Positions 9,285 through 33,861 of a stretch of DNA of 51,143 bases are shown piece after piece. The notes beneath the pieces were generated by a model. The model worked only from the letters and a program-made list of their open reading frames with translations. It was not told where the DNA came from and did no database searches. Where the stretch lies: positions 1 to 51,143 of the forward strand of contig CAJFCJ010000081.1 in the NCBI GenBank assembly GCA_904063045.1. Reading direction: 5' to 3'. The translations under genes were made by a program, and so were the position numbers. How positions within the stretch are numbered: position 1 is the first letter of the stretch; every line of letters begins with the position of its first letter. The stretch comes from Dimorphilus gyrociliatus (lineage: Eukaryota; Animalia; Annelida).

Positions 9285-10599
9285 ATGTCCAATTGATTCT
9301 GAATCATCATCTGAAAACCTATTGATAGTACTTTTTGAAGATCCGAATAATTGTGCTAACTACCACCAATGCATTAATGGAACTTCATATCCGCAAACTT
9401 GTCCACCTGGTCTTCGCTTTAAATTTTCTATTGAAGTATGCAGTTACGTTACCTGCGTTCCTCCAAACATGTTGGGATGTAGGTTGAAATCGTCTGTAGT
9501 TCTTTCGAAAGAGGAATAAGACGAAGAATAAGAAGAGAATAAATGCGGAAATGTGGATAGAGTTAATTCTTTTCGATGCTATGATAATATTGACGAATGT
9601 TCTTATCATTGCTTCAACGGTGTTTCTTGGCCTCAGCGTAGTCCTACTGGCTACTATTTCGCTCCACAAATTAGCGTTTAAGCCTGTAATATTAGGATGT
9701 GTGTTCCATTTATCGAAGCTAATTGTCCAATTCCAGGAGGATGGTCAGAAAGGTCGGAATAGTCGGAATGCGATACTCCATATGGTATTCGATCTAGAAC
9801 CAGACAATGCAATAATCTAACTCTGTCTAATGGCGGTGTAGGCTGTCCAGGTAGTTCAAATGCGAAATAATACCCTGCACAAGTCCAGCGTTTATGGTAT
9901 CATTACCTCGACCAGAAAGTGTTAATAGTGGAAGGATGAATTGGACATCAATAGATATCAATAGAAAACAATTATTTAACGAATTGGATAATAGTCTTCA
10001 TATTAAAACATCAGGAATGTATTACTTTTCAATAACGGGTTCAATGGAAGTTCAAGATTATACCCTGTTAACCCTTGAGAACGTTGGAAGGAGGATAGGC
10101 CTGCAGAAATATCAGAGTAACACCACAATTAATTCAGTAACTAGAGGAGGATTATTCGCATTAAGTAGTTTACATAAACCGAATATAGTTCAAAGATTTC
10201 GAGGTTCAAACTTAATCAGAAGTGAAACTGGAAAAGAAACTTTATGGTTAAGTTTTTACTACGAAAGCGATAGCTGTCTGTTTGTCGCTCGTGATAATCC
10301 AGGGAAGGTGGATATTTTTCATTAATTATGGAATAGGCGTCTACAATACAAACAGAACTAAAGTTTCCTTTTCACAAAATGGTTATATTAGAAAATTGTA
10401 TAGCCGAGAGTACATTTCCCTTCGAAGAGATGTAGGATTACCATACACAGATTCCAGTCTACAAATATATTTAGCAGCTTTTAAATTAAATGAAACTTTA
10501 CCAGTTTTCTCAATTCGTCGAAATATCTTTGCTTGTTCCACATATTTCTCAAGTATAATCTTTAGGGATAAGGTTATCATTGACACATGGTCCAGTTGA
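9285..10599 (+). pseudogene. Chitin-binding (CBM14/peritrophin-A) x2 - TSP1 - tandem C1q-like pseudogene, copy B
   Basis: FEDPNNCANYHQCINGTSYPQTCPPGLRF (CBM14). In a frame not listed in the ORF track, a second CBM14 with TAA at 9679 and a TSP1 motif GGWSERSE*SECDTPYGIRSRTRQCNN...NGGVGCPG (TAG 9760). Then C1q-like SGMYYFSITG...TRGGLFAL, with a frameshift near 10310. Confidence 0.75.
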
Positions 10600-10781
10600 A
10601 ATAATTATACTAGTATATACAGAGCGCCACTCAGCGGCACATCTCTTTCAAGCGGCTTACTACTAATTCGGTTCTATGTAAATCAGTATTTACCTACAAC
10701 TCCACACCTCTAGAAAAGTCTTAACAAAGAGCAACTTTTCAATTTGTACGCAATTTTAAAGGAAAAGGAATTGAATTGGGC

Positions 10782-10870
10782 AATGAGAAAAGAAAACCTG
10801 CTGTTTAATTTCTTAGTGATAAAGTTGCCATTGAATTAAGAAATTAAACAGCAGGTTTTCTTTTCTCATT
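10782..10870. repeat. 34-bp perfect inverted repeat, copy B
   Basis: Same hairpin as 2703-2791. Confidence 0.9.
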
Positions 10871-11738
10871 CAAAGAAAACTATTTTTGAATTACTCTGAA
10901 TTTCTTCACTTAATAAATATTTTTTTTCCAATATCTCCAATAAGACCACTGAACTCATAGTGAAATATGTCAACGTTCTTAGAATAGACATTGAGATAAG
11001 AGCCAAAATATTCCTTAAATTCTCTTTTAACAACTATAATTAATTTAAAATGTTTAGATGTTGTTGCAATGGGAATAAGATCATTTGTTATTTTAATATT
11101 AACAAATTTAAATTTGCATTCTACAAAATCAGTTTAATTGAACTTTTGATTATTGAAAAACTTTAATTAAGCCATCTTTGTATTGAAGATGATGAACAAA
11201 ATTGTGGTAAATGTTTCAAGCTAGAAACTAAACAATTTAACAGTAGTAAAAGTAGTCACAGAATCATCTACCGGAAATGGGTGTGATTCAAATGATTAAC
11301 TATCATTGTACAATGGTTGTTTGTAGTTTGTACTACTTTTTTTATACTTTTGCAATTAATTAGGCCTATAAATTTTTCATTAAGAATACCTCTTTAACAT
11401 TTGCGCTGTTTTTTATCCATCAACCAATTATAAGAATTTGGACAGCTGATTTTCTAAGCAGGTAAGTAATTGAGCTTTGTTAATATTTGTATTGTGAAGA
11501 GGTAAATTTAGGGCTGTTCTGTGCACACCCTTCATCATTTTAAACTTGCCACTCTCCAATTAAACATAAACACAATGCTTTCTACTTTTATCTCTAAACT
11601 TTAATTGCTAATTAGTTTTTGTTTGTCTGAATATTAAACAGTATATAAAGTCATGTTTAGCAAGTATTCATCAAAACTTGCTTCTTGCTTACTTCTCCTC
11701 CTCCTCCTCCTCCTTCTCCTATTCCCTCTGAGATAACC

Positions 11739-12782
11739 ATGAATAATTCTACATTCTTTTATCCAATGTATCCTGTCATTCCGGATACTTTGAATTGGTT
11801 TATAGGTGCAAAAGTCATTTCAACGTTGTGTTTTCTTACCGGTATATTTGGTAATGTTGTAAGTTTTATTATATTTGGAAAGAGTGGTATGAGCGAAACT
11901 ACTACGTCAATCTATCTTCGTTGTTTGGCAATTGCAGATATTGCAGTTCTATTATGTTGGTTTGGTTTAAATATGTTTTTTACAGTTGAACTAAGAGTTC
12001 TTTCCGATCAGCTAATTTTATATTTATCTTGTATGGCTAGGCATACTGTGAGCAAAATGTCTCAGCAGATTAGTTCATTAATACTGTGCGCAATGACGGT
12101 TGACAGAAGTCTGTTCATCCTTTTTCCAACAAAGGCAAAAGCCTTAGCCTCAAAGAAACGAGCGCTGTTTGTAGTTGGAGCAATAACTGTCATGTCAATA
12201 ATAGGCTACTCAATATATTTCCTAATTTATGGCAATCTATTGATTGTTGCTAATCCAAAAAAGAGAGAAACTGGAATATTTGTTTGTCTTGTTCGGGATG
12301 AAAAGTGGGAAACTTATGCCAATGATATTTCTCCAACAATTGATATTATGTTTTTGTACTATATCCCTGGAATTATTCTCCTTATAACAAATATTCTAAT
12401 ATTAAGAGCGTTAATAAATGCTGGTAGAAACAGGAAGAAACTTACAACAACTAGTCAAGATAACAAGGGTCGAAATTCATCAATTATTCTTCTCATTATT
12501 TCAACATATTTCATTCTATGTTCAATACCAAATGCAATATTATTTATATATTTAACAAGATACGTCATAGTTCCAACTCCGAATGACATTGCTTTCTTAA
12601 AAAAGGCTGGTCTTGTAACAGAACTTATAGTTAAATCGAATAGTGGTCTTAATTTCTGTTTTTACTGTATAAGTGGCAATAGATTCAGGAAAGAATTCGT
12701 AGCAATGTTTTGCGGGAGAAAATCCAACAGCAGGAATTCAAATACATCTTCGAAATCCAAAACTATATCTTCCGTCAAGTAA
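11739..12782 (+). CDS. Intronless class A peptide GPCR, copy B
   Basis: Same 347-aa protein as 3659-4702; ATG at 11739. Confidence 0.9.
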   Translation: MNNSTFFYPMYPVIPDTLNWFIGAKVISTLCFLTGIFGNVVSFIIFGKSGMSETTTSIYLRCLAIADIAVLLCWFGLNMFFTVELRVLSDQLILYLSCMARHTVSKMSQQISSLILCAMTVDRSLFILFPTKAKALASKKRALFVVGAITVMSIIGYSIYFLIYGNLLIVANPKKRETGIFVCLVRDEKWETYANDISPTIDIMFLYYIPGIILLITNILILRALINAGRNRKKLTTTSQDNKGRNSSIILLIISTYFILCSIPNAILFIYLTRYVIVPTPNDIAFLKKAGLVTELIVKSNSGLNFCFYCISGNRFRKEFVAMFCGRKSNSRNSNTSSKSKTISSVK

Positions 12783-13269
12783 CACTTTCAGATTTCATCT
12801 ACCACAGATTTTTTGTTCAAAATGACAATTGAATGAAAATTTTAGGTCCATTTATGATTGTTTTTATGACAATTAACTCAAATATTTCCCATCACCCAGC
12901 ACTTGTAAACTTTTATCAATTATTGGTGTTTTTTTTCTTCAGTTAATAAATAAGTCAAAGTATTGAAAATTAACTGTTTTTTTTCTTGAAATGGCCAGAT
13001 CTAGATTTGGCAAATTGAGTAAGAACTTCTATATGCAATAAAATAAAGAATTGCAACAATATGATCCATTAACAACCGTAATTTAGTAATAATCGTTAAT
13101 AAATTTTAGTTGACTATGGTTGCAAGAACACTATAACCAAAAAAGTGTGGCTATATTTAATATACAGTATACTATATAGGTCAGTTGGTTGTTTCACTAA
13201 AATTGAACAGCATTTGCAGATCTTTTGTTATCAAACAGCAAGAGTAACAAGTCTTCAAGAAAGTACTTT

Positions 13270-14010
13270 TTGAATAAGGAATCATTAAAATGTTCCATTT
13301 GTTTTGAACTAAGAATTTGAAAAGACCCTAGAGTGCTACCGTGCCAACATGTGTTTTGTCTACAATGTTTAAATGGTTTAAGAGTTGAGAACTTTCAAAT
13401 TCATTGCCCTGTCTGTAGAGAAGAAGGCAGGCTTCCTAATAGTGGATGTGCAGGTCCAAGAAAATGTTTCATTTCGACTTCTTGCCAAGAAATGTCTCCC
13501 CCCGAAAATACATGCGAAAAGATAAAGAATTTTCAGTATATTGTGAAACACATAATCTTGAAAGTCTATGTTCTAGCTGCTGGGAGGAAAATCACTTGAC
13601 ATGTGAAATTTGGCCTCTTGAAAAGCAAATTAAGAGAAAAGCAAAGCTAAAATCCTACTCACAAGAGGAAGATAGAGATTTTTTTAAAAAACTGAATAAA
13701 GTAAATGGTGAATTTATAGAAAATATTAAGAGAGACTTTCAAAATCGAAAATATATTTATTAAACTAACAAAAGAACAGCAAGAGAAACTTTCGACTATT
13801 TTAGAAAGAGAAAATTTAGACAATGATTTTATTACAACAAATAAATGAACTATCAAAAGAAAAGCCAACATTAGAAATCTTGAATGAAGTAATAATTAAT
13901 TACAAAATAAATACTACTGATTTGAATAAATTTTCAGTATTGATTGACCAATCAGTAGACTTTTCACAATTCTTATTTAAAAGATTAAAGAATTTGTCGA
14001 ATGTTCTATT
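13270..14010 (+). pseudogene. TRIM-like (RING - B-box - coiled coil) pseudogene, copy B
   Basis: TGA at 13318 inside the RING and the same frameshifts as copy A, so these lesions are unlikely to be copy-specific errors. Confidence 0.8.
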
Positions 14011-14304
14011 TTTGAGATTATTCATATTTTCCAGCCTTTTCTATTATCATTCCGTGCTACTACTGCAATACTTTGCAGTATATATCACTTTACAAAACAA
14101 AAGCTAATTATCATACTGGCAACATTCTCAATTGCTTTATATATTTATATTTCTTAATTAGTTTCACTAAAGAATAATTTGACATTCAAATCGGATGGAA
14201 GATTAACATGATTAAATGAAAAATTGAACAGGATTGTTCATAAATGATTATATTAATTATTTTCAAAAACATTCCTTTAACTTTATAAACATTCTAAAGA
14301 GGAA

Positions 14305-17300
14305 ATGAAACTTTTCATTCTTTTAAATTTATTTTGCAGTACATTCTCTTCTATTCGAATTAAATATCAAGATATTTTTGACAGCAATCAATTGAATTAT
14401 AGTCTACAAACAATTCATTCAGATTCAATAAAATCATACGGAATGTTAAAGGTCTACAGCAAAATTTTGCAGAATGAATATTTCGTTGTCTATTATCAAT
14501 TAAATGTTGAAGATAGGAATAATTTTTGCAAAATGATGAATTTTGATGGATTGCATTCTGTAGTAAGACCATGCGATAAAAATTCTGGTTAGATATACTG
14601 TATTACAGATTTTGCGATGAATTAACTATTATGGTACTTTGTTTTTTGATGATTCAGCAAAATACAATACAAACTCGACGGACAACGCTCTTAGTTTTGG
14701 AGAAAAAAAACAATTGTAAATAAAAAATTATTAAAGGAAGAAAATTTGTTTTCTTTATTTTTTTTCATCTAGTTCCGGTTTGGAAACTTGCCAAAACTAT
14801 CATTCTTTTCTTTGTTTAACCTGCTTTAAAAAGGAATCTCAATGTTTGTTGTTACACTGTGACTCTTCAATTCCTTTTTAGTGATTTTTATCCAATAAGA
14901 TCTCATCGCCTTGACAACCTACCATAGCATTTTTCAACTGTACAAGAAATCTACCAACAACACTCTATATAGAGTTATAACAAAAATAAAAGATATGAAA
15001 TACTTTTGTGATAAAGGTGAATATTTTATGAGAAGAAGAAAATCTTGTAAGTTTTTTTTTGGCAGTTTGCCAAATTATTGAAAATTTAATAAATATTCAT
15101 CCTTTTTTCTAGTAAGAATCTCTGATAAGGTTGAAATTGGATTGGATTATAATCAATCCAACGCGTTTTACTCTCACGACAATACTAGTGATTATAGAGG
15201 AATAAAATGTAGCTTTTTGGATATACGAGGCGTGTAGTTTGCTTGAATAATCAATCAACCAATTATCGTTCATTTACTATACAGATGTTAAAAGGACTTT
15301 GGCTAATGATTTTTATATATCATTCTTTGGTTATAGTCTTGAAAAAAAGTTCTTGAATACAGAGAGGGTACTCTTCTACTATGAGTCGAAAACTTATGGA
15401 CCACTTCCCTATTCGTTCAGCTTTTTTGAAAATATGTATAAAGCTTTGAATTCAATCTGTGGAAAATTAAATATGAGATTATATACAAGAATTCCTAATT
15501 ATAAAATCTATCGAACAAAAAACAGATGGCAACAAATGAAAGATGTCAATTTTATATTTTGTCTCTTTTTCTATTTTAAATCATTATCTTTGTTATCATT
15601 TAGGATAAGGAAAAATGCAAATCAACATTTAATCCTGACAGTCTTTCAAAGTATTTTGCAATGTCAAATTGTAAATGGATTGCCGAAAATGAAAGTTATG
15701 ACTGTGAACCAACATGGTCCTATAGGCGGACTATTTCATTCCTTAGTTATTGCGTTAAAAAAGATCCTCTAGTTGACAGTAAATTGATTTTGGTTTTAGC
15801 TAGAGTGGTTTTCCTTAGAAAGTTGACATTCATCTATTTTTCTTTTTCAGATATGAGATATAGACTGTTCAATTTTAAAAATGGTTCAATTTTGAAAAAT
15901 GGTATTTTGAACGGAAAAAATCAATTCAAAGGCGAAAGTTTTGAAGGTGTTTTCCAAATAAATTTTGAAAATTTCTGGTCGAATATCAATCCTTTTCATT
16001 TATATTCAAACGTCATTCAAGCTGCTTGTAAATATTTCGGGTTTGAATATGGAAGGTTAAGCAACTATAATGGGCGAAACTATATTCAATTAGTTCTATT
16101 CACTATAATTTGTGTAGAAACTACAGATTTAGAGAATTGCAAAATAACAAAAGCTCCTCAAAGGGTAAAAAAATCTATTTGTTCTTTAATAAAAACATTC
16201 TTTTTAAGAAAATGATAAATTTCACGTTGACAGTTTAAAGATACTAGAATTTTGACATTCAATGAAAGAAGGCAGTAAATCTATTACTTATATCGTAATT
16301 TAAATGTTACATTTATATTTTATCTTTAGCACAGTGTTCTTTGAATTGTACAATTTACAGTTTTATCCAATTATATCCTGTTTTAGGAGACGTCAATCAA
16401 AGAGTACGTATTAACCATAACCCTAACCCTAACCCTTAAAATCCTAATTAGTTAGTACTCAATCAATGAATATAAAACAGTCTGTAAAAATGAAAAAGGA
16501 CTATTGTACCATGGTTCTTGCTTTTACTTTTACCAATCGAAATATCCCATTTCGGCTAGTGATGCTGTAAGATTATGCAATAGCAGAAATTTAACGATAT
16601 TCGATTTTATAAGATTTCAAGATCTTTTCTACGTGTTCAAGTATCTTACAGCAGTAGCTTTTCTTTCCAATGATTACACTGGCCCACTTACTGATAAAGT
16701 CGGAGGTTTTTCTTTTAAGATACTCTACAAATAGATTAACATAATATCCTCATTTTGCAGCTGTTAAAGAATTCAGCATTCCAACTGGTAAAAATGGCAT
16801 TTAATTTTTTTCTAATTAAAACAAAATAATGTTAATTAGTTTTCAGAATGGCGGAAGATAACAGAGGATATAAACATAGAATATTTCCAAATGGATTATC
16901 CTTCAATTTGAAATTTAGCCGCTTTTTCTAGTAACAGATTATCTTCTTTTAAATCTTCAGTTATCTAAACTTTATGTTTCTATCTCCTTCATCTCCTCTT
17001 CCTTTTCAGTTTTGAGACTAAAGATCAGGTGAAGACAATGAATGTGAAAATAGATGATAAAATTAACTGTTACGAGTTGAAGAATGATCAGTTAGTTTGG
17101 ATTGATATAAAATATCGTGCAGTGCCTTGTTTGCAGGAGAAGTATCAATATTACTTTTGCTACGAACGTGTTGGTGAGTTTAATGCTGTCAACATTAAGT
17201 TATCATCCCATCTAAAAAATAATTCCACTCATTTTGAATATTTCACTCAGGAACGAATTATAAAGATATTATGAATGATTTAATATCTGTTGAAAATTTT

Positions 17301-20094
17301 TCAAATTGTTCATTCAACAGTTTCCTATGTCAAAATTCGAAAAACTGCATTAACGCCATTTATGTTTGCGATGGAATTTTTGATTGTAGAGATGGCGAAG
17401 ACGAAATCAATTGTACAACCAATGATGAGAAACGTCTCTTCTACTGCAATACAACTGTAACTATTCCCTATCAATTTGTTTGTAATTTCATTTCGGATTG
17501 TCCCAACAACATGGATGAAAAATATTGCAGTTGTATCATTTTAAATAATATACTTAACGTAATACTGACTTTTATTTTTCAGCCTACATTTGTCCTAAAT
17601 ACTATAAGTTCGTTAAAAGACAAAATATTAAATTTTTTTAATAGTTACGTAATGTGTTTCTTTTTTATTTAAAAACAACAAAGGCAATGCAAAAACAAAC
17701 AATGCATAAATAAAGATAACTTTTGTGATAATAACCAAGAATGTTTCGACAAATCAGACGAAGAAAACTGTATTGTGAACAATACTTGTTTGTCATCAAA
17801 TTTTCAATCAAATTATAAACAATGCTAATAAACACACAGATTGCAGAGGAAAAACGCAATTTTTATGCGATGGAAAGTGTTCAAGTACAGTATTTCAATG
17901 CGATGCAGATATTAATTGCCTTTCGAAAAGGGATGAATTTGGATGTGGGTTGCGGAAAAAGAAAGAAAGATGTGAATTGACCTATGACAATGACGGACTA
18001 TTGAAAAAAGTCTATTCAACATATTGGAAAATATATTACTGCAATGATAAAATCTGTAATGTAGGTTATTACCAATGTAACATCTATAAATATTGTATAT
18101 CAATTAGTCAAGTTTGCGACGGTATAAGTCACTGTCCTTTCCACGATGACGAATTATATTGCGGTGGGAAGACTTTTATCATTTGTTTCTTTATTCTTTT
18201 CTTCTCTTTCATTCTTTGATTTTAATAGAAAATTTTAATCCAAGTGGTTTTTTCAAATGTAAAAATGAAGAATATTTTATACATCTGAACAAAGTTTGTA
18301 ACAATCATTCAGATTGTAAATACAGTAGTGACGAATTATTTTGTGCCAATCAACATAACTGCCTGAAAAACTGTACTTGTAACATTCCATACGAAATTAA
18401 TTGTCCTTTCGACAAAAGGAACAAAATGACAAAATTGAATTTAGATTCTCTTCTAATCACCAATTTTAAAACTATTGAAATTCATTCAAAGACATTATAC
18501 TACGCGAATATTGCTGTTGTGTCAAATTACGAAATACTTCAATTACGTTTAATTGATATTATTTGGAAAAATTCTTTAAATATTGCTCATATTTTACCAA
18601 ATTTAATCTCTTTAATTATGGAAAATAATGAAATTGTTCATTTAGAGAATATTTTCACTCAAAGTATGGCCATATTGCAGTATTTAAGCTTAAAAAGAAA
18701 TCCTATTAGCAATATTGATCTACTATCCAAAATTCATCTGAATCAACTCTATTCAATTGATCTATCATCTATTAAGGTCAAGGTCATTAAGGATAAGATA
18801 TTTTCTAAAATGAAACGTTTGAGATACGTCTATTTGATAAATTTGAAACTTTTATATATAAAAGAGAAAGCGCTATGGCCATTGAGTAATGTCAAAGAAT
18901 TACATTTGAACGATACCAGTTTTTCATTGAAGAATACAAAAAGGTTGTTTGAAAATCTAACAAATCTTAAAGTTCTGTTTAGTTCATATAGCGATTTGTG
19001 TTGTTATGCAAAAGTCTATTCATATGACCTGACAGTTTGTCTTCCGGTTGAGAATGCTATTAGTACGTGTTTCCATTTAATTGGGTCATATTCATTAAGA
19101 ATTTCCATATGGTTGATTAGTATAATCTCCCTATTGGGTAATATATTGACAATTTGCGCAAGAATTCCATCATCTTTAAACAAAGGAATTAACATAGCCA
19201 GTTTTTTTTTAAATCTATCCGACCTATTTATCAGTATATATTTAATATCAATAGCCGTGGCTGATCAAGTATACAGAGGCAGATATGTACTCAATCATTA
19301 CTATTGGCAAATAGAATTTGGTTGTAAATATTTAGGTTGTTTTTTAAATTTTTCATTGCTAATGTCAATGGGATGTTTACTTTGTATATCAATTGAAAGA
19401 TATATGATAATATCTAATCCTTTTGTGAAGAGGAGCCGCTACATTATCCTAACAGAGTTGATAATTACATTGCTCTTATCATTCATACTAGCAATTCTAC
19501 CTTTTCAACTTTTTGAAGTAAACAATAAATAAATCTATTCAATTTATTCAATTCAATTCAACGAATTTAATGAACCCCATTAAATTTAGGGATATTATTC
19601 AAATACCTCAATTTGTTTTTCTCTATATATTCAAGGTAAAAAATTTAATGGTTGGATATATTCAACAATTCTATTTGGTATATTAACAATGTCAATTTCG
19701 TTAATTATCTCTTTTCTCTATTTTAAAATATTCTCAACCGTTCAACGTTCCGCCAAAGACTGCAAAAGTCAAAATAATAATAATAATCATATTTCTGATA
19801 AATTAGCAGTTAATATCTTCTTAATTGTTATCAGTAATTGTCTTACTTGGCTTCCATTGTCACTGTTAAGTAAGCTCTTTTTTTCAACATAAAAACTATA
19901 TATAGAATTGTATTTTTCATCCAATAGGCATCTATACTACTTTTGGAACAATGCCAATTAATACGGAGCGATATAAATGGCTAATATTAATATTTATTCC
20001 ATTAAATTCAATGCTAAATCCATTTATATATACTCTTGGAGAAATTCGGAATAGGAAGAAAAGTGCTCAGAGAAGAAGAGAGGAAAAAATGTAA
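14305..20094 (+). CDS. GRL101: Multi-exon GRL101-like receptor: signal peptide, C-type-lectin-like modules, 6 LDLa, LRRs, 7TM
   Basis: LDLa repeats 17300-18340 (e.g. CDGIFDCRDGEDEINC) joined by short GT-AG introns. LRRs, DLCC hinge, TM1 LGN, ERY; intron after ~19517; final exon LNSMLNPFIYTL...EEKM* (TAA 20092-20094). CTL motifs GSCFYF/AVRLC at 16500-16580. The part from ~16450 appears intact; exons in 14590-15250 contain apparent stops, so the 5' model is uncertain. Confidence 0.8.
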
Positions 20095-21212: not shown

Positions 21213-21554
21213 GTTCAATATTCCTTAGAAAGTCACTAGACTTTACCAGAAATATATAGCAATATAGAAGTTTTAGCACAAAGCATTTTCCATTCATCCA
21301 AAAGTAGAAAACATGTATAATACTTATCTCTTTATATATTTAGTGAAAAATATGTTGAAACAATAACTCCAAAATTCTTGAAGCATTGTCAAAAATATTT
21401 TAGATCTTTTACACACAGTTCCGGACAAAGATACAGGAGGAAGAGAAAAAATCAATAATAGAAATACAGATTTCATAAAACATTTATATAAAGGAAAGAG
21501 AAAAATAGTTTGACAGGTTATTGTTAATGAAGGCAACCAAGACAAAAGAAGTAC

Positions 21555-21730
21555 TCAAACAAATAGAACCTTTTAAACTTGTCCACAAATAATCTTAATA
21601 AATGTAATTTAAACACTTGTATTTTGTTCAAAGAAAATGTATTGACTAAAGTGAGCTTCTAGTTCTAAACAGACTAGTTTAGATGGCAAGCTGATGATTG
21701 GAGAACTGAACTATCAGCTGTTAATTTCTC
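21555..21730 (+). repeat. Dispersed repeat, second copy at ~26130-26330
   Basis: caaatagaacc...gtccacaaata...gagcttctagttctaaaca...gagaactgaactatca shared. Confidence 0.75.
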
Positions 21731-21749
21731 AGGGTTTAAACACTCTTTA

Positions 21750-23080
21750 AAGACTTGAAGGTTGACGAATTTCAATGTTTATAAAAACATTAGTGACAAT
21801 TTAAGACAAGGAAAAATTCAAAAATATGGTCATGTTTTTATTGATGTCTTCTTGTAAATAATAGTTGATTTTCGAAAGTTGAAGAGTTACATAAAATGTA
21901 ACAATTTTGATACAAGTCCAACAATGAAGAAACTATAAGCATTGTATATTTGATCATTTTTGTATTCTACTGTAACAGTAATAATTAATGACTTCAGTTA
22001 ATAAATTTGGCATCTGGATAAAAGGAGGAAGGTTAGTTGGAATATCCTTTGAAGACAAAGTTAGATTTCTGGAAAATCCACTCTTGTCAACCATTGTGGG
22101 AAAGTTTGAAGAAAGTTTCGCTAAAAATGTCATGAGGTCCAGACTTGATCGGCAATTTTCAACTGATCATATAAGTATTTCGTGTTTAGATTTTGCCTGC
22201 TGAAAATGCCCACCTTCTTCATGTTTACCCAAACAAAGGCATTTTGATAGTCTCTAGCAAAAGAATGGCATTATATTATTGTTTCTTGTTTTTTATAGAC
22301 TCTTTAAGCAGTATAGAATTGCAAAGATGCGTGATGATCAGTAGTATAACAGTTACAGTTTGCGAAATTAGGCACAAAATGCAAAAAATACAAAAATGTC
22401 AACTTCTATGGATTGCACTCAATGGATTGTGAAAAGAAAATTTCGAGTACATCAGATGTAAAGAAGAGATGAGTAAAGAGAAGAACTAAGAAAATGGGGG
22501 TTGATTGAAATCGTATCCCGTTTAAAGGAAAATATTTAAGCATTTAATAAATTCATAGATTTAAAAAAGCTGTCTTTGTTATGTAAAACTAAAGTATGCT
22601 ATTTAGGTGGCACTTTTAAATTTATGAACATACTTTGTTTGTATTCTAGTAACTTTTAAACTTTGTATAACATCCTTAGCTTTTTACATTTTGGAGACAT
22701 TTTCATAAATATATATTCATTATTAATTATGATATTCTCACTATATTACCATTAGTTCCGTAGTTAGAACAATTTTTTTACCATTGAAATATCATTTCCT
22801 ATTCCTTGGAGATATAAAGTATTTCCCAGCAACTCTAACACTCTCAAAAATGCACAATTCTTAAGTAATGTCACTAATTTTTGTGAATAAAACTTTAAAC
22901 TACAATGATTAAGATTTTTATTTCCAGATTATTAAGATTATTAGTAATTACTGTTATTAATATCTCACCAGAGTTTTTAATTTGAGTGGCATAGGCATAA
23001 ATTCTGTCAATTCTGTAAAATTTTTCAGAATTTTTATCATCCATTTTAAAGTCCAATTGATCACATTCACAGAAATTGAT
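21750..23080 (-). pseudogene. Highly degraded RNI-like LRR remnant
   Basis: Minus-strand fragments such as NLNHCSLKFYSQKLVTLLKNCAFLRVLELLGN, with many stops and frameshifts. Confidence 0.35.
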
Positions 23081-23339: not shown

Positions 23340-24466
23340 TAAGGTATAAAGCAGAGAGTAATTATTCAATTTCTTGTATCACAAGTTATTGCAATCAATA
23401 TTCATAAGCAATCAAAAGTTTTTTTGATAGTACAACACTTAGGAAAGGTTCAGTAAGAAAGTGGGTTAAAGAATTTAAAGGAGGAAGAACAAATATTCTT
23501 GATGAAGACAGACCAGGATGCACAAGAACAGTCAGTATCAATGAAATAAGGACAGAGTTATGGCTCTAATCAGATATAATAGGAGAATAAGCCAGGCTGA
23601 GTTATCTCAAACATTGAATATAGGCCATTCAGTTGTTGAAGGTTTGATTACAAGTCTTGGATTGAAAAAGATTATCTCAAGATAGATTCCCTACCAACTT
23701 AATTGGGAACAGAAAGACATAAGGGTGGAGAGGTCTACAGAATTCCTAGAAAAGTATGGTGAAGGAGAGAATTTTATGTCAAAAATTGTTACAGGAGATG
23801 AAACATGGGTATTCTATCATGAATCATTAACTAAAAGAGTTTCTTTAGAATACCATACAAAACTATCACCACCACCAAAAAAGGTTGAGGCAGGTAAGTC
23901 AGCAGACAAACTAATGGCATGTGTGTTTTGGTATAGGGAAGGGCTTATTCACCTGGAATTTCTAAATTCACATATCAGAATAAATTCAGAAATTTGCATC
24001 AACATTCTAAAGCGATTAAAACAAAGAATAAATAGAATCAGGCCTAATAGAGAAGTGATTTTTTTGCAAGACAATGCCAGATCTCACACCAGCCTACAAA
24101 CAAGCCAATATCTTCAAACAACTGGATGGGTAATGCTGCCTCATCCAGCCTACAGCCCAGATCTTGCTCCATCAGACTATTATCTTTTCTGGAAATTGAA
24201 GGACCATCTTTGCAGACAAATATTTGAAAATGATGATGAATTAAAAACAGCAGTCAGGGCCTTTTTTAGGTCCAAACCGCTCTTATACTTCGCCAAAGGA
24301 ATTGATATGCTTCCCGCCAGGTGGCAAACATGCATTGACAATAATGGGGAATTTGAAGCTAAATAGACATACCTAGGACATTAATTAACATTTATGAATA
24401 AGCATATTTTGTAATTTTTTTTTAGCTGTTAGACACAAACGGCGAGAATTTTCCGGGTGACCCTAA
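23340..24466 (+). mobile_element. Mariner (DD34D) transposon, left end missing, N-terminal HTH frameshifted
   Basis: TGDETW, LQDNARSH-(34 aa)-D, YSPDLAPSDY motifs in ORF 23725-24366; degraded HTH (VRKWVKEFKGGRT) upstream; right end ...ccgggtgaccctaa followed by TA. Confidence 0.93.
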
Positions 24467-25709: not shown

Positions 25710-26089
25710 ATGTTATGTATGAATGTAAGTCAGTGGATGTATGTCAGTATGTGAGCGTCACTTAAGAAGGGAGTTTGACTTAGCCTAAAGCCGGGACAGT
25801 CTAGTCAACTTGATGTCATATCACCAGTTAAATAACGATGTGGCACAATGTGGCACGAACGTGGCAACACGAATGAGCACAATCAAACACTCAGTTAAGT
25901 GACGCTAGCAAGATATAAAAGGAAGTGAATGTAATAGAATGGTGTGAGAGACCAAGAGTACCTTAAATACAATTTTATACGGAATTGTTCGCAATTCCGT
26001 GATACAAGCAATAAACAAAATCTTGTAAAAAGACAATCGGTATTTGTACTTTGTTGTATTGTAATTATAGGAATTTCTGGTTCATCACA
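25710..26089 (+). mobile_element. Probable solo LTR (separate family)
   Basis: GC-richer block with TATA (gatataaaag ~25913), AATAAA (~26010) and a ...catcaca end; no TSD found and left boundary uncertain. Confidence 0.4.
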
Positions 26090-26957
26090 ACTGTAATCGT
26101 CCTTTCCAATCATTTACCAACTTGCCAAAGTACTGGTCCAAATAGAACCTTTAAAGTTTGTCCACAAATAGTCTAACAAATGCAATTTCGGTAGAAATTA
26201 ATCAACAAAACACGAGTATTTCGTCCAAAGAATATGTATTGAGTAAAATGAGCTTCTAGTTCTAAACAAGCTAGTTTAACAACCAGCTGACGGTTAGAGA
26301 ACTGAACTATCAACTGTTAATTTCATAGGGTTTATATACTCTTTTAAAATAGTCATTTTGGTGAATACAAAGTAAAGGCCTAAAATACCCGGACACTGTA
26401 AATTTTGATAGGCTGAAGATTAAAAATTTTTTAAAACACCCCAAAAATGTTATGTTTGTTTTAAATTTGTTTTTTTGTCTAAATTTCCATGGGATTAGGG
26501 ATAGGGCAAAACACAACAAAACGAGACATTTTCTTCCAAATCCCCTTAAAAAGGACTTAGATAATTAGATAAATAGATAATTTAAGTATAAAAAATGCAT
26601 AGAAATTTTAGTGTAAAGTTTAGGGCTGGGTTTGGGGCTTTTTTAGAGTTAGTGTGAAGATCTATCTTGCTATAGATAAGTATTATTAAAGTAGTATTGC
26701 GTGATATTGATTCAGAACTGATATAGATCAACTATTGGCCTACTTTTAAGAAGCGCCATAAGTCCAATAGAATTAAATATGTTACAGACTGTTACAGATA
26801 TTTAACTGAAATGGCTATTCATTGCAGAATGGTATTCCATGTTATTAGATAGAAATTTTTATTATACGGTATATCTCAGTCAAACTAATGCCAAAAAATT
26901 ATACACAATAAATTGTACAAAATGTCTATTCAATAATAGTCTTTTTGTTCTATTCAT

Positions 26958-28247
26958 TTAAAATAAGACTGCATTTGGATTAGCATCTGGCCACGTTTCC
27001 GGCTTGTACTTGTTTCTGAACAATTTCAGAAGGTTTAATGCGCGATTGATTTGCGGATATGTTAATGTGTGATTTATCGCAAATCTAATGGCAGCATTTT
27101 TTTCTGTTGCAGACGGATAAAGGTCAGGTGCGGGAAACATTTGCTCTTTAATAAAGTCGTCATTCATTTCTAAAACTAAATCTAATGATCCAACAATAAA
27201 TGTTGGAATTAGCGTGTTGTCGTCACGGATTAATACGCCGTTGTAGCCTAATTCTATACAAGACTCTTTAAAGTATTTGATTTTATCGAATAGATCATCT
27301 CGTCTCCATTTTTCGGTCTTTACTAATTTTACAGTTTCAATTAATCGTTCGGCAAGACAGTCCTGAGCGGCCAGAGTGAAAATGGACATATTTGATCCTT
27401 TTCGAATGTCATCAATATACTCTCCAGCGACTTTGTTAAGAACTACGGCACCACCACCAGCACCCATAGCCTTTCCAGTTGAGAAAGTTCTAATAGGTAT
27501 ATCATCTTCAAGACCTAATTGTTTTACTAAACCTCCTCCATCTTCGTTATAAATACCGTAAGAATGACTTTCATCAACCAAAAATATACAACCAGTTTCT
27601 TTACAGAGCTGCGCTATTTTTTCAATGGGTGCCATTGTTCCGAAGGCGGAATAGACTGAATCAACTCCAACTAATCCAGGCCCATTAGCCCTAATAAGTT
27701 CTCTCAGGTGGTCGACATCGCAGTGATTGAAATATAGAGAGTTGTATCTACCTATTGCCTTTGCTCCAAGATCCATTGTGGGATGGGAATATTTATCTAA
27801 ATAGATTGGTACTTCCGGTCTATCCTGTAAAATTACTTGAAATGCAACTTGGTTTGCTTCCGTACCAGAGTTGACAAATATAGTTTTATGTCCACCTGCG
27901 TGTTCCGAGATGACTTCTTCCAATTTGGTCACCTTTGAATTGGGATGTCGATTGTAGCAGCTGGAACGATTAAAGCTAATTCTTCCATGTTTAACAATGG
28001 AACTACCATCAATTTGGTTAAGATAGGGATGAGCTGAATAGCTTAAATAATCGCAAGAAGAGAAATCAATATCTCCCTTTAAACTGTCAAAGTATACATC
28101 TCCCAAAGCTTTTTTAATCAACCCTGTGGATTCCAATAAAGCTGGAGAAATGGGTCCAAGTGCTTGAATTTTATCAGCAGTACTTTGATACCTTAGAGAA
28201 AGTGTCAGGTGTCTAACGACTTTGAGAAATCTATAAGACCTTAACAT
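26958..28247 (-). CDS. cqsA: Intronless PLP-dependent alpha-oxoamine synthase most similar to CqsA/LqsA autoinducer synthases, with mitochondrial-type presequence
   Basis: ATG at 28247 (429 aa). Motifs SSCDYL, NSGTEAN, SHPTM, DHLRELIRANGPGLVGVDSVYSAFGTMAPI, GCIFLVDESHSYG, TFSTGKAMG (PLP Lys), PATEKNAAIRF align by eye with V. cholerae CqsA ([43 protein letters not shown]). AATAAA on the minus strand at 26858-26863. Confidence 0.8.
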   Translation of the reverse strand: MLRSYRFLKVVRHLTLSLRYQSTADKIQALGPISPALLESTGLIKKALGDVYFDSLKGDIDFSSCDYLSYSAHPYLNQIDGSSIVKHGRISFNRSSCYNRHPNSKVTKLEEVISEHAGGHKTIFVNSGTEANQVAFQVILQDRPEVPIYLDKYSHPTMDLGAKAIGRYNSLYFNHCDVDHLRELIRANGPGLVGVDSVYSAFGTMAPIEKIAQLCKETGCIFLVDESHSYGIYNEDGGGLVKQLGLEDDIPIRTFSTGKAMGAGGGAVVLNKVAGEYIDDIRKGSNMSIFTLAAQDCLAERLIETVKLVKTEKWRRDDLFDKIKYFKESCIELGYNGVLIRDDNTLIPTFIVGSLDLVLEMNDDFIKEQMFPAPDLYPSATEKNAAIRFAINHTLTYPQINRALNLLKLFRNKYKPETWPDANPNAVLF

Positions 28248-29061
28248 CGTTGTCCGATTAGCGACTGAAACTAGTAGGTCATTAATTGTATATTTATAGA
28301 CTTTCTTTATCCATCTTGAATCAAAATGTGATACTGAAAAGATAATAATAATCTCCTTTTTAAACAAACACCAAACAGAAAAAAGAGGTAAATTTTATAT
28401 CAAATTTCTTTGGCAATGCTTATTTTCCTAAATCTCTTCTTCAAAATCTCAATAACACCAAGACAACTTCGGAAAAAGCATTTCTTTGCCAAAATTTTGA
28501 TTGATTGTTAATAGGTCAAAGTTTCTAATCGCAAGAACTTCTGATAAGAGATTAGCAAATAAAATTTCTAAAACATAAATTACATCGACTAAAGATTAAA
28601 TGTTCTCAAGATTTTTTTTAAAGAACCATCAACAATTTTTAAAATTTTTGTATTAAATTCAATTTGGTAGGTCTTTTTTTGCAAGATCTCAATGCGATCT
28701 GATAGAAAAAATTATTCCTTGACTGTATTATTTGAAGATTAGAAAGTTAGATAAGATATTACAATTCTAGTAGTAATTTGAGCACAACAATGAAAAAACT
28801 AGGCTAGTATCAGCTCTTTGCTGTTTTCTGTTATATAATCTACTTTATTGATTGTTGTTTAAGACAAAGTTTATATGATTGTATACAACTAGACAGCTGC
28901 TTATTTACTAAGTTCAAAGGTATCTTTGATGCTATTCTGTACGTTTTTAGAGAGTGTTATACCTTCAATACTCTACAGTAATCACCTTATCCTACATTTC
29001 GAAATAGAAGAAAATATAAACCCAAACATTCATTCAAGTTACTTTTTAAGATTAACAGTAT

Positions 29062-29555
29062 TGTACACTTATGAACTATAGTTTATAGATATTTTGTAAA
29101 TAATACTTACCATATGGTAGAAGTGTTGAAGTAGATGTTACCTCTGGGGTAGATGGTACTGAACTGCCAGAATCAACCCCTTTTATAGGCAAAGGATAAG
29201 ATATTACATAATCAAATATGTTGACAACAACAAGTGTTTATTTTCATAAATATGATGTAACAATTGACCTTCGAGGGGTAACATACACAAAGTTGTTGTT
29301 GTTGTTTACATCGCTATTGCATAATTTGATAACCCTTGATCCTGTTTTGTTGTGAACAATCCTTATCTGGGGTTAGACCCTTGTTGTTGACAGCTAAGGC
29401 ATAAACAACTGATAAGGAATTGTATAAAAGCAGGGTATAGGTAGTAACAGGCATTCAGTCCTGAATCAACTCCCTTAGTGAACAGGTCTAGTATTACTTT
29501 AGAATACAGTTATATTATTCTTACGTTTTGGTTCTATATTCATCCTCCCTCAATT
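29062..29555 (+). mobile_element. LTR (left copy), last ~5 bp missing at the junction with the next element
   Basis: Direct repeat of 33365-33861; starts TGTACAC; TATA gtataaaag at ~29422. Confidence 0.9.
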
Positions 29556-29757: not shown

Positions 29758-31190
29758 CAGTACTGGCGGTAAGTCACTGTTACACCTCAAAAAAATAATA
29801 TTTTCTTGATTTTTTCTCTTTCCATAGTTAAAGAATGAAAATGAAGGATATTATTATATTTTAATAATATTCTTATTTATTTATTTATCATTATAGAGAG
29901 AAAATATACATTTTTCATTTCAAATCTCTGAATTATTGATATTTTAATGCAGTAGGCCTATTTTCAGTGGGAGCATAAGTCAAATCACAAAAATTAATCT
30001 AAAAGAATATAAAAAGTATTTTTTTGTTCTTATTTTGACTGTTATTTACAGGATATGAAGTTGTCATATGATTAGACAGTAAAGCTACGTCCCTATCTTC
30101 ATGAACTTAATGTAGCCGAATACCATGATATTCCCTCCCCCAAATTTTACTGTTTTTGTGGTATATTTGGGATCGTTCCATTTGGGGTTGACAGAAAATG
30201 TCCACAAATGAGAAATTTCAAGACAAAAATTTGGATTGGGAAATGGTTAGGCAAAAGAAAACAGCAACTTATTTGTACTTAGGAGGGTCTCCCCTAAGGG
30301 TTAGGGGTAATGGAAAAGGTTAGGTACAGGTAAGGGCTGGGTTAGGGTTAGGGTAAAAGCACTGATTTGTGGACGTTTTCTGTCGCATCCGTTCCATTTA
30401 CCTGGTGGCCTCCTAACAAACTCCTTCCTCCTGGGATGCAGCTCAACCTTTGATTCATCAGAAAAAATTACTTTTTTCCAATTTTCAATACCCCACTTTT
30501 CTCTCTCTCTACAGAACTCTTTCCTACTTATTATCTGCCTCTTGCATAAAACAGGTGTTTTGGCTGCAATCCTTCCATTTAATTATTTTTTCCGAGTACT
30601 TTCTTCACTGTTGTAAGAGACAGAGATATAGGTATGCCAGAGTTATATAAATTTGCCTTTCCATTTTTGGTGTCACTGTTTTTGGTCTACCACTTCTTTG
30701 TTTATCTTTGACAGTTTTTAGGTCTTTAAATTTATTTTTTATGTTTTGTACAGTAGTTGGACTACATTTAAAAAGCTTTACCACTTTTCGAATGGACATT
30801 TCAGGTCTTTGAAGACAATTTAAGATAGAAATTCTTGTTGCTTCAGATAGCTTCACCATTTTTATTTTAAATTTGTCAACTGTTAGATTACACATGCGCA
30901 AACACATAAATGACCTTAAAATCTGGTTAAAAGTGACACTACTCAATGATCAGGGTAAATTTTTTGAACATAACTGATGCTTGTGCTTTTCCATAAATAG
31001 GCCTATCACATTAAAGTGATCATATTTCTGAGATTTTAAATTAAAAACATATATTTTCTTTCTATAATGATAAGAAGAATATTATTAAATATAGTAATAT
31101 CCTTCATTTTCATTCTTTAGGCGTGGAAAGAGAAAAAATCAAGAAAATATTATTTTTTTGAGGTGTAACAGTGACTTACCGCCGGTACTG
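29758..31190 (-). mobile_element. Internally deleted Tc1-like transposon
   Basis: ~115-bp TIRs (cagtac[t/c]ggcggtaagtcactgttacacctc...), TA after the right TIR; ORF 30605-30946 encodes a paired-like HTH (MVKLSEATRISIL...SIRKVVKLFKCSPTTVQNI...RSGRPK). Confidence 0.88.
30185..30390 (-). mobile_element. HINE-like telomeric-motif element nested in the Tc1
   Basis: 20-bp IR gacagaaaatgtccacaaat / atttgtggacgttttctgtc around gggttagggttaggg. Confidence 0.65.
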
Positions 31191-31296: not shown

Positions 31297-33342
31297 TTGT
31301 CAGAAGAAGAATGCAGAAAGATGTATCAAGAGAAGAAAGCTTACTCTCGGCAGAAGCTTTATAACAAAGGAAATATTTGGACTTATAATGAAAGGAAAGG
31401 AACAGCCTATAAATACCCATCAACAACTTTAGTTATAGAATATACTACAATTATACAAGTTGGAAAAGCATACTGGTTACCTTATCAAAACTATGTAACA
31501 ACAGATCTTGATTTTGTTGAAGATTGTCCAGTCCAACAAAGATTTTGCAGAACTATAAATTCAGTTATTATCCTCCAATTGTTAAAAGATAATAGAATCA
31601 TGGGACAAGAATCACCATGGAGAGTGATTTCAAGAAGGATATCATGTATAAAGTTTGCAGGATATTACTCCTGTCCTGAATATACTATTATGGATAAATA
31701 CTATAAAGATAGTTTCATAGAAGGATTTGGAGGGCCAGGTACAAAAGTTCTGGTTCCTATCGAAGAAAACCAACTTCTGAGAACAGATTTATCAACATCT
31801 GGGTACCAAGATGATGAAATGCTAAAGAATGCAGTATTCAAGCTGGCGTCAGAAGAGGGAGTAGTTTATTTGAAAAAGTACCAGTCAAAGAGTTTAATGC
31901 TAAGGAATGCTCTTCAGAAAGACCATGAAAGTATACCAACATTTAGAGATTGGTATAGGGAAGGAGATAAAACATATCATATGATGATTAAAATCTCTGG
32001 TCATGCTGTAGTCAGAACATACCAATTAAAGCAACCTATAGCACCAGATGTATGGAGTATACAAAATGCATATATTGGAAAAATGTTAAAGAAAGTAACC
32101 TTGCCCATTGCAAAGGAGTCAAGAAAAGATGAGTACAAAGTTACCCACAAATTTGTTGAAGAAAAATTGTTGCCAAACACAGATGTTTGGTTTCAAGGAC
32201 CTCAAGGGAAGCAGTTTAAGTTGACTAAAAGAAAATTAGGATATCTCCTACTAGAAAGAGTTGCAAAATCAGAAGAAGAAAAAGAGATGAAAATAAAAAT
32301 CACCAAAGTGGAACAAGGGCGCATGGAAGAACCCATAAATATTAAGGATGCAGTAAGAACAGCAGCATTTCTAAAATCAGTTGACAGAAATTTCATCAAC
32401 TTACAAGAAACCTTTAACCAGCTCTCAAGAATGTTATGTAGAGCATTTGTGCAGAGGAATAGAATGATAACTCTACTAAGTCCTATCTCACCTCAGTTAC
32501 CAACAGTTTTATCTGAAGAGAAAGGAACACATAGCACTTGGCTGGGAGACCTCACAACAATTAATTATTGTACACAACACAAATCTATTCAGATCATATG
32601 TGACTTGAACATTATTGTGAAAGATGGTAAATGCTCAAAGCAACTATTGGCCAAGTATAAGGAGTTAATATTCTCAGTGGAGCCCATAACCCATCAGATA
32701 CGTGAAATCAGCTTAAAAGATATAATATATGGCGAATGTAACACTGAACAAAATCTATTCAAGGTAAAAGATAATCCTTTGGATAGCCAGAGTAATAATG
32801 AACAGAAAATATTTATTCATTATTCTACAAATGGATGCAAATTCAGGAAAGTTGCTGCTCAATCAATAAGATTAAAGATTTCTAATAACCTGGAAGAACC
32901 TCAATTAGACATTGAAAGACTCTCAGAACTTTTGAAATTAGGTATCAAAGAAGACGTTGGAAAAAAGGGTGTACAGCTACAGCAAGTATTGGATTATATG
33001 ACAAATAAGCTTGATCAACATTCAGATCAACTAAATTATGCAAAACAAATTGGCATTGACCCTGCAGTAACTAAATCTAGAAGATATTTTATGGCTTGGA
33101 CAAAGAAACCACTACAAACTATTATCAATTTCCTTATTCCTGCAACAACAACTGGTGCAATTGGAATGATATTGTATTGGATAAAGATGAAAGGATTACA
33201 TAAAAATGTAACACAAAGAATACTAAACAGATTCAGAAAAACAAATGACATCAAATCCATTGAGGAAGACCAACCCTTAAGAGTTGTCAGCAGCAGGAAA
33301 GGTCAAGTTATTATTGCCAATGTTGAACCATCAGTGGAATGA
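31297..33342 (+). CDS. Env-like viral glycoprotein (probably class III, gB/chuvirus-like) of an LTR retroelement, 5'-truncated
   Basis: 681-codon open frame; Cys pattern (EEECRKMY, CPVQQRFC, MLCRAFVQRNRMITLLSPISP...WLGDLTTINYC), C-terminal TM and basic tail; followed by PPT and LTR. The frame extends back to the Tc1 TA site (31191) across one extra T in the T-run at 31251-31257. Confidence 0.72.
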   Translation: MSEEECRKMYQEKKAYSRQKLYNKGNIWTYNERKGTAYKYPSTTLVIEYTTIIQVGKAYWLPYQNYVTTDLDFVEDCPVQQRFCRTINSVIILQLLKDNRIMGQESPWRVISRRISCIKFAGYYSCPEYTIMDKYYKDSFIEGFGGPGTKVLVPIEENQLLRTDLSTSGYQDDEMLKNAVFKLASEEGVVYLKKYQSKSLMLRNALQKDHESIPTFRDWYREGDKTYHMMIKISGHAVVRTYQLKQPIAPDVWSIQNAYIGKMLKKVTLPIAKESRKDEYKVTHKFVEEKLLPNTDVWFQGPQGKQFKLTKRKLGYLLLERVAKSEEEKEMKIKITKVEQGRMEEPINIKDAVRTAAFLKSVDRNFINLQETFNQLSRMLCRAFVQRNRMITLLSPISPQLPTVLSEEKGTHSTWLGDLTTINYCTQHKSIQIICDLNIIVKDGKCSKQLLAKYKELIFSVEPITHQIREISLKDIIYGECNTEQNLFKVKDNPLDSQSNNEQKIFIHYSTNGCKFRKVAAQSIRLKISNNLEEPQLDIERLSELLKLGIKEDVGKKGVQLQQVLDYMTNKLDQHSDQLNYAKQIGIDPAVTKSRRYFMAWTKKPLQTIINFLIPATTTGAIGMILYWIKMKGLHKNVTQRILNRFRKTNDIKSIEEDQPLRVVSSRKGQVIIANVEPSVE

Positions 33343-33364: not shown

Positions 33365-33861
33365 TGTACACTTATGAACTATAGTTTATAGATATTTTAT
33401 AAATGATACTTACTATATGGTAGAAGTGTTGAAGTAGATGTTGAATCTAGGGTAGATGGTACCGAACTGCCAGAATCAACCCCTTTTATAAGCAAAGGAT
33501 AAGATGTTACATAACAAACATGTTGACAACAACAACAAGTGTTTATTTACATAAATATTGTGTAAGAATTGACCCTTGACAGGTAACCTACACAAAGTTG
33601 TTGTTGTTTACATCACTATTGCATAATATGATAACCCTTGACCCTGTTTGTTGTGAACAATCCTTATCTGGGGTTAGACCCTTGTTGTTGACAGCCAATG
33701 CATAAACAACTGATAAGGAATTGTATAAAAGCAGGGCATAGGCAGTAACAGGCATTCAGTCCTGAATCAACTCCCTTAGTGAACAGGTCTAGTATTACTT
33801 TAGAATACAGTTATATTATTCTTACGGTTTGGTTCTATATTCATCCTTCATCAATTCTACA
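33365..33861 (+). mobile_element. 3' LTR (497 bp, TGTA...TACA)
   Basis: Inverted termini, preceded by the PPT, internal TATA, repeated at 29062. Confidence 0.92.

Follow-up and report, generated by a model that had tools for sequence, protein, structure and literature searches.

An intronless alpha-oxoamine synthase gene of the annelid Dimorphilus gyrociliatus belongs to an animal family nearest the bacterial CqsA/LqsA autoinducer synthases

Three kinds of alpha-oxoamine synthase (AOS) are taught for animals: 5-aminolevulinate synthase (ALAS), glycine C-acetyltransferase (GCAT), and serine palmitoyltransferase (SPT). Contig CAJFCJ010000081.1 of assembly GCA_904063045.1, from the dinophilid annelid Dimorphilus gyrociliatus (51,143 bp, all of which is referred to here as the window), carries a gene that is closer to the bacterial quorum-sensing autoinducer synthases CqsA and LqsA than to any of these, which raises the question of what the gene encodes, whether it belongs to the animal, and how it came to be there. 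The coding sequence (CDS) lies on the minus strand at 26958 to 28247, where the assembly also has a called gene. The open reading frame (ORF) is uninterrupted and intronless, runs from the first ATG at 28247 down to 26958, and encodes 429 amino acids followed by TAA; the mechanical ORF reaches further, to a TTG at 28367. The analysis described below makes it likely that this is an expressed nuclear gene that has one paralogue in D. gyrociliatus and belongs to a spiralian AOS family that is nearest to CqsA, LqsA, and JqsA and that most probably arose by a single ancient transfer from bacteria.

A preliminary description of the locus, drawn from the sequence, had reported an intact enzyme with all catalytic motifs, and the translation bore this out. 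A Pfam scan of the protein returned only PF00155 (aminotransferase class I/II, Aminotran_1_2; E value, 3.5e-22), with a score of 79.5 bits against a gathering cutoff of 19.7. The motifs are SHPTM (S154 to M158), DHLRELI (residues 179 to 185), GPGLVGVDSVYS (residues 189 to 200), DESH (residues 225 to 228), and STGKAMG (residues 256 to 262). The catalytic set of the AOS superfamily, which depends on pyridoxal phosphate (PLP), is complete. The PLP-stacking histidine is His155 of SHPTM (minus-strand codon at 27783 to 27785), a position occupied by His in 28 of 28 bacterial CqsA-like sequences and in 25 of 26 other AOS. In DESH (minus strand, 27564 to 27575), D225 and H228 align with D204 and H207 of Escherichia coli BioF; the Asp pairs with the PLP ring nitrogen, the His bonds O3', and Ser227 between them is a signature of the CqsA clade. 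The Schiff-base lysine is Lys259 of STGKAMG (minus strand, 27471 to 27473), which matches BioF K236 by register and is Lys in 28/28 CqsA-like and 26/26 other bacterial sequences. Arg388 (minus strand, 27084 to 27086), the carboxylate-binding Arg universal in AOS, aligns with BioF R361, Kbl R368, and HemA R371. By alignment, every residue conserved across the superfamily (N132, H155, D225, H228, S256, K259, and R388) is retained.

Structure prediction agreed with this assignment. The AlphaFold2 model had a mean pLDDT of 91.6, with low confidence only in the first ∼30 residues. In a Foldseek search of the PDB, the top six matches were all chains of Vibrio cholerae CqsA (E values, 7e-30 to 7e-28), and TM scores of 0.77 to 0.88 to CqsA, ThAOS, ALAS, BioF, and Kbl indicated a predicted AOS fold. 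The margin of CqsA over ThAOS and ALAS was small, since a single fold is common to all AOS enzymes.

The protein begins with an extension, MLRSYRFLKVVRHLTLSLRYQS (residues 1 to 22; minus strand, 28182 to 28247), that resembles a mitochondrial presequence. The first 20 residues include five Lys or Arg residues and no Asp or Glu; the extension is modeled as a helix with low pLDDT and ends in LRYQS, an R-x-x-S pattern, with ARYQS and ARFQS at the matching place in the closest relatives. The match to V. cholerae CqsA begins at residue 58 of the window protein and at residue 40 of CqsA, leaving ∼18 extra residues in the animal protein. Comparable basic, acid-free N termini were found in most aligned family members. 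This composition points to a presequence and makes a mitochondrial location of the family's enzymes likely. ALAS and GCAT are also mitochondrial.

Next, the protein was compared with the known synthases. Among the NCBIfam models, NF005526 (alpha-hydroxyketone-type quorum-sensing autoinducer synthase) gave the best score, 196.5 bits, followed by bioF (152.9), kbl (117.5), the ALAS model TIGR01821 (111.3), and the SPT models (at most 103); all of these fall below the respective equivalog cutoffs of 428, 426, 460, 338.55, and 500 to 670 bits. On the NF005526 scale, V. campbellii CqsA scored 697 bits, crown bacterial members 444 to 580, deep bacterial branches 294 to 395, and the animal family 185 to 277. 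The scanned animal members had NF005526 as their top model, ∼45 to 100 bits over the next AOS model, except for a second copy from the annelid Owenia fusiformis, which matched no NCBIfam model at an E value of 1e-40. Among solved structures, V. cholerae CqsA (2wk8) was the best match by sequence (E value, 1.2e-33), and the most CqsA-like stretch in a residue-wise alignment to it was the block from DHLRELI through GPGLVGVDSVYS (residues 179 to 200; minus strand, 27648 to 27713). The second-best solved relative was ThAOS of Thermus (PDB 7POA/8S1Y; E values, 3e-28 by sequence and 3e-27 by fold), a bacterial enzyme annotated as BioF/Kbl type that lies outside the trees built here and shows that AOS enzymes can take many pairs of amino acid and acyl-CoA; Kbl, human ALAS2 (1e-21), and human SPTLC2 (3e-10) followed. 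Kbl/GCAT and BioF share with the window protein their superfamily and reaction type (an acyl-CoA plus a small amino acid yielding an alpha-aminoketone), SPT shares the fold and an acyl-CoA substrate, and ALAS shares the fold, the catalytic residues, and probably mitochondrial import. The closest systems are nevertheless CqsA (the CAI-1 synthase of V. cholerae and V. campbellii; PDB 2WK7-9, 3HQT, and 3KKI), LqsA of Legionella, and JqsA of Janthinobacterium, which, like the window protein, are PLP-dependent fold-type I AOS. The DHLRxLI, GPGxxxVDSxYS, and DESHS blocks are common to CqsA and the window protein, as the CqsA/LqsA-like signatures claimed beforehand had implied.

The kinship was also examined column by column with 21 signature positions, each conserved in 75% or more of the bacterial CqsA-like sequences and in no more than 15% of other AOS. 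Of these signature columns, 10 are shared by half or more of the animal members (Q137, Y149, A154, I185, G189, G191, S227, V241, F252, and S256). G189 and G191 of the GPG motif are Gly in 26 to 28 of the 28 CqsA-like sequences, and Arg and Lys are commonest there in other AOS. The other 11 columns are not shared, including an Arg at Lys+5 (26/28 bacteria, 0/16 animals) and F375 (28/28 versus 6/16). In bacteria, CqsA couples S-adenosylmethionine (SAM) or, less efficiently, 2-aminobutyrate with C8/C10 acyl-CoA (PMC3376566, PMC10491745), and pairing of the synthase gene with cqsS is typical of the system (PMC3376566); downstream of V. campbellii cqsA, for example, comes a gene encoding HATPase_c and Response_reg domains, the CqsS hybrid sensor kinase. 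No ORF for a CqsS/LqsS-type sensor kinase was found near the window gene or at the loci of its animal relatives that were examined.

The window protein could be imagined as a CqsA/LqsA equivalent that joins SAM or 2-aminobutyrate to medium-chain acyl-CoA, so that the worm would release CAI-1/LAI-1-type signals that mimic or jam quorum sensing. CqsA is indeed the closest characterized enzyme by hidden Markov model (HMM), sequence, fold, and tree; the 10 retained columns include GPG, Y149, and the Ser of DESHS; and the worm lives on marine biofilms, with near-identical RNA contigs present in a coral metatranscriptome. However, the protein is only ∼25% identical to CqsA, its 196.5 bits compare with 444 to 697 for true members, more than half of the clade columns differ, there is no cqsS-like neighbor, and a presequence-like N terminus would be unusual in the synthase of a secreted signal; host codon bias and an animal genomic setting further separate it from CqsA. 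With 196.5 bits against the 428 required, the protein is not a CqsA equivalog, and we regard a CqsA-equivalent activity as decidedly unlikely. To the same degree we doubt that annelids and brachiopods, with an enzyme derived from a bacterial quorum-sensing synthase, make alpha-aminoketone or alpha-hydroxyketone lipids of CAI-1/LAI-1 type in their mitochondria, whether to talk to or jam Vibrio/Legionella-type CqsS/LqsS sensing in the biofilms on which they live and settle or as a hitherto unknown class of endogenous signaling lipids. The initial designation as a CqsA-type gene thus holds for nearest kinship and does not hold for equivalence. Two architectures were noted among bacterial relatives: a cluster (P0035) of 1,195-amino-acid fusions with a C-terminal CAI-1-synthase-like domain, fragments of which are annotated as MMPL transporter, and an 802-amino-acid protein (P0016) with two tandem AOS domains, of which only the second is a true CqsA by score.

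An intronless, bacterial-like gene with a GC content of 38% between flanks of 30% could in principle be bacterial contamination or a product of chimeric assembly. The excess GC, however, comes from the first and second codon positions only; GC3, at 0.30, matches that of host ORFs, and relative synonymous codon usage correlates at 0.76 with the host ORF pool and at 0.09 with V. campbellii cqsA. Assembled reads joined the gene to the host genome, as would be expected of the native gene that had been proposed: a 2,690-bp contig from the main DNA run (X1) spans 26399 to 29088 with 0 differences and includes the gene and unique flanks on both sides. Its depth of 142 compares with 106 to 134 for neighboring unique contigs and 10^4 to 10^5 for the repeats beyond, indicating a single-copy host gene. 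Contigs from two more runs cover 26816 to 29136 (X2; 3 differences) and 26868 to 28131 (X5; 0 differences). The assembly itself was built from PacBio reads with four rounds of decontamination (PMC7854359), and a paralogue and orthologues, described below, lie within large animal contigs and chromosomes. Contamination or chimerism is thus ruled out for practical purposes, its probability being vanishingly small.

The gene is likely transcribed, as judged from assembler contigs rather than stranded reads. A coral metatranscriptome run (RNA according to its record) yielded two contigs, 27110 to 27546 and 27610 to 28095, with 3 to 4 differences each; both lie entirely within the CDS and leave the unique flanks uncovered. 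In a 2017 run of unrecorded type that was returned under an RNA filter, the CDS and 3' untranslated region (UTR) had a depth of 343, and the upstream interval 28346 to 28936 had a depth of mostly ∼5, with one bin at 32; this run is probably RNA. A loose end at 28323 in this run fits neither a 5' UTR intron nor a spliced leader, and trans-splicing was not reported with the genome (PMC7854359). An AATAAA poly(A) signal was read on the minus strand at 26858 to 26863, ∼95 nucleotides past the stop codon. The X2 contig ends at 26816, ∼42 nucleotides downstream of the signal; the X5 contig ends at 26868, 5 nucleotides short of it, and hence does not confirm it.

To place the gene among animals, relatives were sought in genomes and protein collections. 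D. gyrociliatus has a paralogue (P0002) on the 839-kb contig CAJFCJ010000022.1 that is intronless, encodes 431 amino acids, is 57% identical to the window protein, and has an SSF transporter gene and LARP1 as neighbors. P0003, from Logan contigs, is 50% identical to the window protein and shares the SSF neighbor with P0002. By tblastx, this SSF transporter is absent from the window, and alignment of the window with the P0002 locus is limited to the CDS. Owenia fusiformis has two copies, one of which, CAH1779745.1, lacks introns and sits inside a UCH gene on a 35-Mb chromosome. The brachiopod Lingula anatina has two intronless tandem copies, XP_013411736.1 and its neighbor; these copies (L006:2136-3434 and L006:8001-9224) are nearly identical and ∼4.5 kb apart, and the pair is a lineage-specific duplication. 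Further copies were found on contigs of 0.1 to 4 Mb with LINE, SET-domain, or GPCR (G protein-coupled receptor) neighbors and on mRNA-sized contigs. Every animal copy examined for gene structure was intronless. An HMMER scan of 1.84 billion representatives returned ∼20 animal-side relatives, and all of those with species names were annelid or brachiopod; further searches, for which the family profile and P0004 served as queries, added few members, of which a single one, the second Owenia copy, carries a species name.

The preliminary description had envisaged a domestication particular to this animal. With two paralogues in D. gyrociliatus and relatives in Owenia and Lingula, that view was abandoned, and a recent transfer into Dimorphilus only was rejected. 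The search for orthologues proposed at the outset instead revealed a previously uncharacterized gene family, an intronless PLP-dependent AOS of annelids and a brachiopod. Public databases label its proteins "unnamed protein product" or "uncharacterized protein LOC106174625." A full-text literature search, of incomplete coverage, found no paper on a CqsA/LqsA-like oxoamine synthase gene in annelids, brachiopods, or other metazoans, and a compendium of metazoan horizontal gene transfer did not mention these taxa in its text.

The origin of the family was examined with three trees: a FastTree analysis of 142 sequences, an IQ-TREE analysis (LG+C20 PMSF) of 70 sequences, and an IQ-TREE analysis of 66 sequences including 23 named bacterial genomes. 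The reference sequences comprised BioF and Kbl of E. coli, HemA of Rhizobium, CqsA of V. campbellii, and ALAS of a choanoflagellate and an amoebozoan. All three trees agreed in grouping the animal sequences as one clade (support, 99 to 100/98). Within it, the window protein pairs with P0002 (98 to 99/86 to 89), with P0003 outside. The bacterial CqsA-like sequences, from Vibrio, Photobacterium, Janthinobacterium, Legionellales, Nitrococcus, Cupriavidus, and Paraburkholderia, formed a clade with support of 96/86 to 87. A 100/100 branch joins the two clades as sisters, apart from the BioF, Kbl, ALAS, and SPT-like enzymes; BioF and Kbl are on the far side of the tree, and eukaryotic ALAS groups with HemA beyond that branch. 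Forcing the animal clade together with ALAS cost 86 lnL units and was rejected by the approximately unbiased (AU) test (p-AU = 0.00125). Kinship with ALAS or GCAT was therefore dismissed on profile scores, trees, and the AU test against ALAS, in keeping with the earlier assertion that the protein is nearest to CqsA/LqsA rather than to ALAS, GCAT, or SPT. Forcing the animal clade to nest among the bacteria, together with the crown CqsA sequences, cost 10.5 lnL units (p-AU = 0.25), and the AU test does not distinguish "sister" from "nested" placements. One candidate animal member, P0189, proved to be bacterial and branches with a Desulfobulbaceae genome.

Several observations weigh against the reading of an ancient bacterial transfer behind an expressed, probably mitochondrial spiralian family. 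The animal clade stands next to the sampled bacterial CqsA-like sequences as a whole rather than among them, so that the topology by itself cannot establish passage of the gene from bacterium to animal. No donor lineage came to light, and in an exhaustive HMMER scan no bacterial protein exceeded ∼32% identity to the window protein (best matches, ∼30 to 32%; 31 to 38% over the best segment for the Owenia protein). The label "spiralian" is anchored by just three named species, the presequence was called from composition, and transcription was read from assembler contigs and one run of unrecorded type. The window copy itself has evolved at roughly three times the rate of its paralogue (branch lengths of 0.51 to 0.62 versus 0.18 for P0002), and it departs from two positions that are at least 85% conserved across all aligned AOS (Asn to C176 and Gly to N234), changes that may have altered its activity.

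The sister placement and the lack of a close donor, together with fully host-like codon usage and the presequence-like targeting sequence, would suit vertical descent, in which an ancient eukaryotic or metazoan AOS paralogue was lost in most lineages and no horizontal transfer took place. On the other hand, the other sequences on that side of the 100/100 branch are bacterial wherever an origin is recorded, the nearest ESM Atlas clusters are 86 to 100% bacterial, and nesting within bacteria is tolerated by the AU test. The animal-side relatives are also few and, where named, restricted to the two phyla. An all-bacterial sister group and the absence of introns make vertical descent the less economical account, and we consider it unlikely, though worth keeping in view. 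Descent from a bacterial gene is the simplest explanation. Of the horizontal acquisition originally put forward, the bacterial source remains the preferred reading on these grounds; we infer the donor and the direction of transfer, given a sister placement and identities of at most ∼32%.

The rapid evolution of the window copy also bears on a third alternative, that this copy is a relaxed or neofunctionalized duplicate that is losing or changing its activity, with the ancestral function residing in P0002. The long branch is in line with this idea, as are six departures from the animal-clade consensus (versus one in P0002), two of them the highly conserved positions named above, the loss of the SSF synteny of P0002 and P0003, and the transposon-rich surroundings. 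Yet the ORF is intact with all catalytic residues kept, the model is confident, and the gene appears to be transcribed at good depth. Among the three dinophilid sequences, dN/dS was 0.14 to 0.26 (0.26 between the window gene and P0002), values that are rough because dS between the paralogues is saturated (above 1.2). A relaxed or repurposed window copy is, in our judgment, very unlikely. Elsewhere in the family, P0015, P0018, and P0038 (the second Owenia copy) have very long branches and a replaced catalytic Lys or His, and they may be pseudoenzyme paralogues.

If the family does descend from a single ancient bacterial transfer, a history can be outlined. A CqsA-like bacterial gene would have entered the germ line of an annelid-brachiopod ancestor before the two lineages split. 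It would then have gained a mitochondrial presequence and drifted to the base composition and codon usage of its host, and repeated duplications of the family would have taken place separately in several lineages. Among dinophilids, one copy would have remained beside the SSF gene; the copy in the window would have moved to, or become surrounded by, transposon-rich DNA and accelerated.

A mechanism can likewise be proposed, for which the fold and the complete catalytic set are the established elements. Following import into mitochondria, PLP bound to Lys259 would form an external aldimine with a substrate of the amino acid type; the carbanion arising from it would attack the thioester of an acyl-CoA, CoA and CO2 would leave, and an alpha-aminoketone (or enaminoketone) lipid would be released. 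As judged from its residues, the enzyme thus probably carries out the standard AOS reaction, condensation of an acyl-CoA with an amino substrate, in mitochondria. Since only half of the CqsA-specific positions are kept in the family, the substrates may differ from SAM and C8 to C10 acyl-CoA.

These results describe an old, hitherto undescribed, and probably mitochondrial family of animal enzymes, placed by the trees as sister to the bacterial CqsA/LqsA synthases, not a recent capture of a quorum-sensing gene. The family would be a fourth kind of AOS in animals, so far seen only in spiralians. Should the enzyme be active, these animals would be making an aminoketone lipid that has not been sought, which could be an interkingdom signal, a defense compound, or a new metabolic intermediate. 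As a single clade in which the examined copies are all intronless and most aligned members have presequence-like N termini, the family also offers a clean candidate for a bacterial gene of ancient origin that two phyla have retained.

The surroundings of the gene are those of an animal genome and, as the preliminary description had stated, include host transposons. A mariner-type transposase ORF lies at 23725 to 24366, and three repeats near the gene exceed it in read depth 100- to 1,500-fold. On the 3' side, a dispersed high-copy repeat at 25982 to 26375 reaches a depth of 150,000 to 220,000, versus 142 for the gene (run X1), and has a related copy at 21549 to 21751 by self-BLAST. A second repeat lies upstream, at 29062 to 29555 (depth, 9,000 to 38,000), and a third, recognized by read depth, at 30119 to 30512. 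The D. gyrociliatus genome has been described as transposon poor with transposon islands (PMC7854359), and the repeats at 25982 to 26375 and 30119 to 30512, at up to ∼1,500 times single-copy depth, fit such islands.

The repeat at 29062 to 29555 recurs by self-BLAST as a direct copy at 33365 to 33856 (∼495 bp, 92% identical), and the pair looks like long terminal repeats (LTRs). An ORF of 681 amino acids at 31297 to 33342 is enclosed by the two copies and had no Pfam match even at an E value of 1; repeats and ORF together look like an LTR element with an unrecognized internal protein. Because one read contig extends from the synthase gene into the left-hand repeat, only ∼815 bp from the ATG, this LTR-like sequence could supply the promoter of the gene.

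The remaining ORFs of the window are also of animal type and comprise two rhodopsin-type GPCRs, an LGR-like receptor, a PhyH-domain gene, and a leucine-rich repeat (LRR) gene. The GPCR pair sits in a 7.3-kb tandem duplication (1 to 7303 and 8061 to 15386; 99.6% identity), each copy of which contains one intronless rhodopsin/Srw-type ORF (3599 to 4702 and 11685 to 12782); the pair represents a segmental duplication of very recent date or else an artifact of assembly. The ORF at 18159 to 19532 combines LDL-receptor class A (LDLa) and LRR sequences with the start of a seven-transmembrane domain and resembles a large exon from the gene of an LGR-type receptor (glycoprotein-hormone or relaxin-like).

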